The position numbers and the translations under genes were made by a program. The notes under the pieces are model-generated. The model was given only the letters and a program-made list of their open reading frames with translations, ran no database searches and had not been told where the DNA came from. 64,000 bases of DNA from NCBI GenBank assembly GCA_964247055.1, contig OZ176055.1, forward strand, positions 8,246,001 to 8,310,000, given 5' to 3'. This DNA is from Paragordius varius. Taxonomy: Eukaryota; Animalia; Nematomorpha. Shown here in pieces: positions 39,638-40,353 of this stretch; within the stretch, counting starts at the first letter, position 1; each line of letters begins with the position of its first letter.

Positions 39638-40353
39638 TTAATATCCAGTATATTGATTAGTGTCATTGACTATGGATAAAGCTTTTTCCTTATATTGGGT
39701 AGATTTATCTAAATTTTTGTCGCACCCATCCCCCTTTTTATACATGACACTCAACAGCGCGCAACACTTTGGATTATTCATATCACAACATTTGAGGGCA
39801 TAATTGAATGCTTTGTTTTTATCAGGGTTCAGTCCATTTTTACCTTAATATAATATGTGGGAAAATTTACCATTTAAGTATAAATGTGCTAAATCAAGAC
39901 ACGATGCATCATCTTGCAAATCACATGCCTTAGCAAGATAATAAACATATTTTTCTAAATTACTGTTGTTGTGATGGAATAGAGCATGTAAATAACAAGA
40001 TTTAGCAAAATTATAATCACATCCCAATTTGGAGTATTTTCCGACTGTCTGTGGATCTTTGGGAACACCTTACAATTAATGATTAAAAACCTTCACCAAA
40101 ATAAGAATATTTGGCAAACTTATAACAACTACGACCAACTTTATATTTATCACAATTCTCTTTATAAATTTTGGTTGCTTGCCGTAAATTTTTTTTAATA
40201 GTTTCGAAATAATCCCCTAAGCGTTGACAGGCTAATTATTAAATAACATGTACATTCGCTTCTTTTTTCTTCGTAACAAACATAACTATATTCTATAAAA
40301 ATATTTTCCAAATATTTTTGGACATCTTCGTCGTTTCTAAAATCCCATGCCAT
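39638..40353 (-). CDS. COA7: Cytochrome c oxidase assembly factor 7 (Sel1-repeat, Cys-rich), 4 exons
   Basis: Spliced product MAWDFRNDEDVQKYLENIFIEYSYVCYEEKRSESCQRLGDYFETIKKNLRQATKIYKENCDKYKVGRSCYKFAKYSYFGEGVPKD..KACDLQDDASCLDLAHLYLNG..CCDMNNPKCCALLSVMYKKGDG..* is collinear with human COA7 as I recall it (DFQDEEQVKSFLEN..CYHEKDPDGCYRL). Introns: 40232-40253, 40069-40090 and 39844-39870. Confidence 0.92.

Follow-up and report, generated by a model that had tools for sequence, protein, structure and literature searches.

Introduction

Can segments of only 22, 22 and 27 nt be spliceosomal introns in a conserved gene of a hairworm? The question is raised by a locus in a 64,000-nt stretch of the Paragordius varius assembly (the window; contig OZ176055.1, positions 8,246,001 to 8,310,000), in which a homologue of cytochrome c oxidase assembly factor 7 (COA7) is read from the minus strand in four pieces. 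The pieces are separated by GTACATGTTATTTAATAATTAG (segment 1, 40253-40232, minus strand, 22 nt), GTTTTTAATCATTAATTGTAAG (segment 2, 40090-40069, minus strand, 22 nt) and GTAAATTTTCCCACATATTATATTAAG (segment 3, 39870-39844, minus strand, 27 nt). A sequence-only reading, made without database searches, had proposed that these segments must be removed to restore the COA7 frame and that they are ultra-short introns of a TE-rich animal. COA7 acts in the mitochondrial intermembrane space; it is rich in cysteine and built of Sel1 repeats.

Most animal introns are longer than about 40-50 nt. In a survey of 51 metazoan genomes, Hadjez et al. (Mol Biol Evol, September 2026, PMC13644364) found only two bearers of introns shorter than 30 bp, the myxobolid myxozoans (median 22-27 bp) and Dicyema japonicum, on the evidence of positional conservation and long-read RNA. 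Both groups are parasites with reduced genomes, and the authors predict further cases. Nematomorpha are not mentioned in the text of that paper; in the literature that we searched nothing was found on hairworm intron sizes, and the Gordionus genome preprint does not mention introns. The sequence-only reading had listed ciliates, nucleomorphs and dicyemids as the known bearers of tiny introns, a list that proved incomplete, as the myxobolid myxozoans were missing from it.

Results

Gene structure at the COA7 locus

The coordinates of the exons and of the intervening segments are given in Table 1. When the four exons are joined without the three segments, a 645-nt coding sequence results, consisting of 214 codons and a TAA stop codon with no internal stop. 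In the unspliced locus all frames are broken, and retention of any single segment leads to a premature stop at codon 53, 83 or 155. All three segments begin with GT and end with AG, all three junctions are in phase 1, and each segment either has a length that is not a multiple of three or contains an in-frame stop. Their GC content is 0.20, as compared with 0.32 for the exons, in a window with 29.5% GC. Sequences, coordinates and lengths of the segments were thus as the sequence-only reading had given them, and its statements that the two 22-nt segments are not multiples of three and that the 27-nt segment carries an in-frame TAA also held.

Table 1. Features of the COA7 locus in the window, with their counterparts in Gordionus sp. 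m RMFG-2023.
Feature	Positions	Strand	Length (nt)	Description	Gordionus counterpart
COA7 exon 1	40254..40353	minus	100	ATG at 40353-40351; ends in phase 1 of codon 34; encodes MAWDF start	100 nt; same MAWDF start
Putative intron 1	40232..40253	minus	22	GTACAT...AATTAG; phase 1; removal restores frame	38 nt; same codon and phase
COA7 exon 2	40091..40231	minus	141	best PDB match is human COA7	141 nt
Putative intron 2	40069..40090	minus	22	GTTTTT...TGTAAG; phase 1; removal restores frame	39 nt; same codon (81) and phase
COA7 exon 3	39871..40068	minus	198	matches to Sel1/Hcp-type cysteine-rich repeats	207 nt; one 3-residue loop indel
Putative intron 3	39844..39870	minus	27	GTAAAT...ATTAAG; phase 1; in-frame TAA	40 nt; homologous Gly codon, same phase
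COA7 exon 4	39638..39843	minus	206	stop TAA at 39640-39638; Sel1 match; C-terminus ...TGY*	221 nt; C-terminus ...TGF*
Possible polyadenylation signal	39633..39638	minus		AATAAA overlapping the stop codon; inferred from sequence alone; hexamer frequent by chance at 29% GC	

An adenosine lies 7-8 nt before the 3′ end of each segment, in the contexts TTTAAT, ATTAAT and TTATAT; such motifs are expected by chance at 20% GC. An out-of-frame upstream ATG was also observed, which opens a 25-codon ORF (40293-40370, minus strand) overlapping the COA7 start codon.

Identity of the encoded protein

The individual exons were compared with solved structures and domain families. The top structural match of the exon 2 piece was human COA7 (PDB 7mqz, residues 42-85; E 2.2e-6), and the exon 3 piece matched Sel1/Hcp-type cysteine-rich repeat proteins (1ouv, E 1.7e-12). 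The exon 4 piece matched Pfam Sel1 with an E-value of 4.3e-5, which is below the gathering score for the piece alone, as well as Sel1 proteins in the PDB and COA7 residues 169-222 (E 1e-7).

With the exon 3 piece as query, an exhaustive HMMER search against 1.84 billion representative proteins returned mostly generic bacterial-type, distant Sel1 proteins with no more than 40% identity. When these hits were rescored with the spliced protein, a single one stood out (P0097), which aligned over residues 46-206 in one 137-bit stretch; the remainder scored 61 bits or less. P0097 comes from the hairworm Gordionus sp. m RMFG-2023, and its cluster mate P0151 is XP_065322475.1, a 222-aa protein named "cytochrome c oxidase assembly factor 7 homolog" in RefSeq. 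Searched against the PDB, P0151 matched human COA7 end to end (E 1.2e-34), followed by HcpC (1e-23). The spliced window protein and P0151 share 50.5% identity across 214 residues, both start with MAWDF, and their alignment is free of gaps at the junctions. Five cysteine pairs with C-X8-9-C spacing (26/35, 60/69, 97/105, 129/137 and 166/174) are common to the window protein, the Gordionus protein and human COA7 (7mqz). The length of 214 residues with Sel1-like repeats fits the expectation for COA7, which is approximately 215-235 residues.

These results bear out the assignment of the gene to COA7, through both the 7mqz match of exon 2 and the Gordionus COA7 homologue. The alignment across junction 1 that the sequence-only reading had offered, CYEEKRSESC against CYHEKDPDGC, likewise agrees with the 7mqz sequence. 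We conclude that the locus is, with high probability, an intact and single-copy COA7 homologue; for its product, a location in the intermembrane space and a role in the assembly of respiratory complexes, both expected of COA7, are predicted only. Word-index protein searches with the Gordionus proteins recovered only their own cluster, and neither another hairworm COA7 nor a product of the window gene was found. A ciliate or other protist origin of the DNA was considered and rejected in view of the standard genetic code and of the closest relative, an animal protein with the same gene structure.

P0097 is itself a second product of the Gordionus locus (L001, 3001-3786), with 181 aa and an N-terminus (MHVLRKIG...) that replaces exon 1 and part of exon 2. 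It may represent an alternative start or an annotation variant.

Intron positions shared with Gordionus

P0151 was mapped onto the Gordionus COA7 locus to obtain the structure of the gene. As shown in Table 1, that gene also consists of four exons separated by three introns, and its AT-rich introns begin with GT and end with AG, as do the segments in the window. The Gordionus junctions fall in codons 34, 81 and 150 and those of the window in codons 34, 81 and 147, all of them in phase 1. The three-codon offset at the last junction corresponds to the 3-residue loop indel in exon 3. Because the same three codons are interrupted in the same phase in proteins that are only 50% identical, the segments are best explained as inherited introns rather than as random frameshifts or assembly errors. 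The difference between the two hairworms is one of length: 38, 39 and 40 nt in Gordionus, as opposed to 22 (intron 1), 22 (intron 2; 21 in one sequencing run) and 27 nt (intron 3) in the window. Lengths of 38-40 nt are in the usual short-intron range for small invertebrate genomes.

Two features of this comparison define its scope. The Gordionus gene model was taken as annotated in the database, without sight of any RNA behind it, and the direction of the change in intron length rests on a single comparison without an outgroup. In a comparison of the window with the Gordionus locus for synteny, the COA7 exons alone matched.

If the locus were a decaying COA7 pseudogene, the segments could be small insertions or frameshifts flanked by GT and AG by chance, with another copy of the gene being the functional one. 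In favor of this possibility, neither expression nor splicing is backed by RNA evidence, and GT..AG segments that join open frames are frequent by chance in the window. Chance insertions, however, would not be expected to fall at the same codons and in the same phase as the Gordionus introns, after first and second exons of identical length. The spliced frame, moreover, has remained open over its full length at 29% GC and has kept all 10 paired cysteines along with half of its residues in common with Gordionus. Given also the copy number of the locus (see below), we regard the pseudogene explanation as very unlikely.

Taken together, the orthologous intron positions argue strongly that the three segments are real ultra-short GT-AG spliceosomal introns of a COA7 gene, as the sequence-only reading had proposed; their removal from RNA is inferred. 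The proposal draws support from the introns annotated in Gordionus, all three of them at matching positions and in matching phase, and from the variation inside the segments that is described below.

Chance expectation and the choice of boundaries

With boundaries fixed by the ortholog, GT and AG are present at 3 of 3 sites; the product of the window dinucleotide frequencies, f(GT) x f(AG), is 0.0019 per site. A blind scan gave a different picture. Segments of 18-34 nt that begin with GT, end with AG and join flanking open frames of at least 35 codons were counted throughout the window, and five dinucleotide pairs served as controls. The scan returned 78 GT..AG segments and 64-133 in the controls, which is no enrichment. 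The joining of open reading frames was therefore dropped as evidence, and the case for introns is carried by the homology that flanks each junction, together with the dinucleotides at the boundaries which this homology fixes. Since the scan does not rise above background, the window alone gives no demonstration of a genome-wide class of micro-introns.

A further possibility is that the introns are real and have other boundaries or are alternatively spliced (intron 1 could, for example, be 16 or 37 nt long, and intron 2 28 or 34 nt), or that they are inefficiently spliced, as in microsporidia, so that only some of the transcripts are productive. Frame-keeping, stop-free GT..AG pairs are indeed available at the first two junctions: alternatives of 16, 31, 37, 46 and 61 nt at junction 1, and of 28, 34, 40, 46 and 52 nt at junction 2. 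Inefficient splicing has been described for very short microsporidian introns (cited in PMC13644364). Against other boundaries, only the 22/22/27 combination yields a gap-free alignment to Gordionus COA7 at the junctions (at junction 1 also to human COA7) and returns exons 1 and 2 at 100 and 141 nt, as in Gordionus; at junction 3 no stop-free, frame-keeping GT..AG alternative to the 27-nt segment exists. We consider this alternative very unlikely and retain introns of 22, 22 and 27 nt as the preferred reading, in which the exact splice sites at junctions 1 and 2 and the efficiency of splicing are inferred.

Sequencing reads at the locus

Contigs from four sequencing runs (X1, X3, X4 and X11) pass unspliced through COA7, with no joint at any intron. 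Read depth in these runs is flat and at the single-copy level over COA7 and the unique intergenic DNA. With flat depth and no joints at the introns, the four runs behave as DNA and are silent on splicing. In RNA-labelled runs that carry the same species label, none of the words of the locus were found.

The same contigs bear on a possible assembly artefact, in which the segments would be spurious insertions in the reference. In support of such errors, the assembly differs from all four runs at position 40280, and one run differs by 1 nt in intron 2. Against them, the segments are found at the same places in contigs obtained independently from X1, X3, X4 and X11. One X1 contig (39884-40642) spans introns 1 and 2 and another (39774-39913) spans intron 3, unchanged; an X4 contig (40140-40290) and an X11 contig (40105-40372) span intron 1; and an X3 contig (40077-40745) covers all of intron 1 and a portion of intron 2. 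No indel was seen in intron 1 in the X1 and X4 contigs. Assembly indels, which had been named in advance as an observation that would refute the introns, were thus looked for, and the introns passed this check; an assembly artefact is all but excluded.

An intact paralog elsewhere had been named as a second refuting observation. No intronless or other second copy of COA7 with at least 90% identity was detected in X1, X3, X4 or X11, a result that, together with the single-copy depth, also counts against the pseudogene explanation.

Variation among the runs was located both inside and outside the segments. X1 lacks 1 nt at 40073, at full depth, so that its intron 2 is 21 nt long; the flanking exons are unchanged in length, and the shortened segment would contribute an in-frame TAA if retained. 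The length difference between X1 and the assembly is a polymorphism limited to intron 2. X11 carries two substitutions in the 22 nt of intron 1 (40240 and 40247) and at least 9 in the 645 exon nt. Over the four runs together at least 10 exon substitutions were found, at least five synonymous and at least five not. The distribution of variation between introns and exons fits non-coding spacers, which we take as no more than indicative, as the numbers are small and are lower bounds.

Three further observations were made on the reads. At 40280 all four runs have C where the assembly has A, which changes codon 25 (Val to Gly); the assembly base could be a private allele or an error. One X11 contig joins 39320 to 41424 and omits 2103 nt including the whole of COA7; as its short side measures just 26 nt and repeats lie at both of its ends, it probably reflects joining through repeats during assembly and not a deletion allele. 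Near-identical copies of the locus occur in runs X1-X5, X11 and X12 under four different coded organism labels, which may denote one species under various names, close relatives, or hosts that carried worms.

Genomic surroundings

A Ty3/gypsy-type LTR retroelement lies 3 kb from COA7, at approximately 43200-46800 on the plus strand. It encodes a gag-like zinc knuckle, an aspartyl protease, RT-RNase H and an integrase, in frames that are split over several ORFs. High-copy repeats at 38600-39400 and 40720-40920 bracket COA7 and reach 25 to 500 times the unique depth in the deeper runs. COA7 does not, then, lie in a compact, TE-poor setting, and the description of this DNA as TE-rich fits the window.

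Rfam and tRNA scans of the window, in which snRNAs were sought, returned nothing. Four further candidate micro-introns, in annexin-like and ZNF622-like genes, were probed with Pfam on their flanks and received no domain support. One GT..AG segment, 33 nt long and in phase 0 (5849-5881, minus strand), lies between two ORFs that look like the parts of a degenerate annexin repeat cut in half (...FLDKTQR / DLEQSFKAVLPKEF...). This segment could be an additional very short intron, and neither annexin-like flank gave a Pfam match. An ORF at 11745-12053 on the minus strand has a weak match to zf-C2H2_2 (ZNF622/Rei1-like), and two GT..AG segments considered with it, of 29 nt (10874-10902) and 32 nt (10593-10624), had no Pfam support. 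Elsewhere in the window, an ORF at 49985-50269 on the plus strand contains a clear Kunitz/BPTI domain (Pfam E 1.3e-16).

Discussion

In the model that we favor, the COA7 introns were inherited from a common ancestor with Gordionus and have become much shorter in the lineage of the window. They would be removed by an ordinary U2-type spliceosome, with each tiny intron recognised as one unit. The adenosines located 7-8 nt upstream of the 3′ AG in a TTAAT or TTATAT context are candidate branch sites; this is inferred, and they cannot be distinguished from chance. A transcript that escaped splicing is predicted to end early at a premature stop and to yield no full-length protein. Two further propositions of the sequence-only reading, recognition by intron definition and mis-annotation of such genes by standard gene finders, remain inferences; the sole hint for the latter is that no spliced product of the gene is present in the protein collection. 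If the minimum-intron cut-off of an aligner or gene finder is set at 30-40 nt, genes of this kind would be expected to be broken up, possibly inflating apparent gene loss in such genomes.

A bolder reading is that the COA7 introns represent a nematomorph lineage with a discrete class of introns of 21-27 nt, at sites whose introns measure about 40 nt in a related hairworm. We lean towards this interpretation, by a narrow margin. If it is true, introns below 30 nt would have arisen independently a third time in animals, for the first time within Ecdysozoa, and for the first time in a repeat-rich rather than a compacted genome. The shrinking of introns could then be separated from genome reduction, and hairworm gene counts and estimates of "gene loss" that were obtained with default minimum-intron settings would need to be re-checked. 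The occurrence of tiny COA7 introns in repeat-rich DNA argues against simple genome streamlining as their cause.

Ultra-short GT-AG introns are a known kind; the hairworm would be a new bearer of them and the third animal lineage. The closest parallel is offered by the myxobolids (Henneguya salminicola, Thelohanellus kitauei and Myxobolus; PMC13644364). In both cases GT-AG introns of 22-27 nt lie at conserved positions between conserved exons of an animal, the 5′ signal is cut to about GTa, and A residues are found a few nucleotides upstream of the AG. The evidence from positional conservation is also of the same type. Myxobolids, however, are parasitic cnidarians with compact, TE-poor genomes, in which tiny introns are the genome-wide mode and have Iso-Seq support, whereas the window comes from an ecdysozoan, its COA7 gene lies amid high-copy repeats and an LTR retrotransposon, and the case rests on one gene without RNA data.

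Dicyema japonicum (Lu et al. 2019, cited in PMC13644364) is also a parasite, with introns below 30 nt and reduced splice-site motifs. Unlike the source of the window, it belongs to the spiralians, and both its genome and its body plan are strongly reduced. As Dicyema is unrelated to Nematomorpha, the hairworm case would be an independent origin.

Outside animals, introns are about 20-30 nt long in Paramecium, 15-16 nt in Stentor and 18-21 nt in the Bigelowiella nucleomorph (see also citations in PMC13644364). The COA7 introns fall in the same size range, and in these systems as in the window retention results in a frameshift or an in-frame stop. The former are protists or nucleomorphs, and the ciliates among them use variant codes, in contrast to the standard code and the animal gene of the window. 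As compared with myxobolids and dicyemids, the COA7 locus is a clean case, anchored by an ortholog, in another phylum-level lineage.
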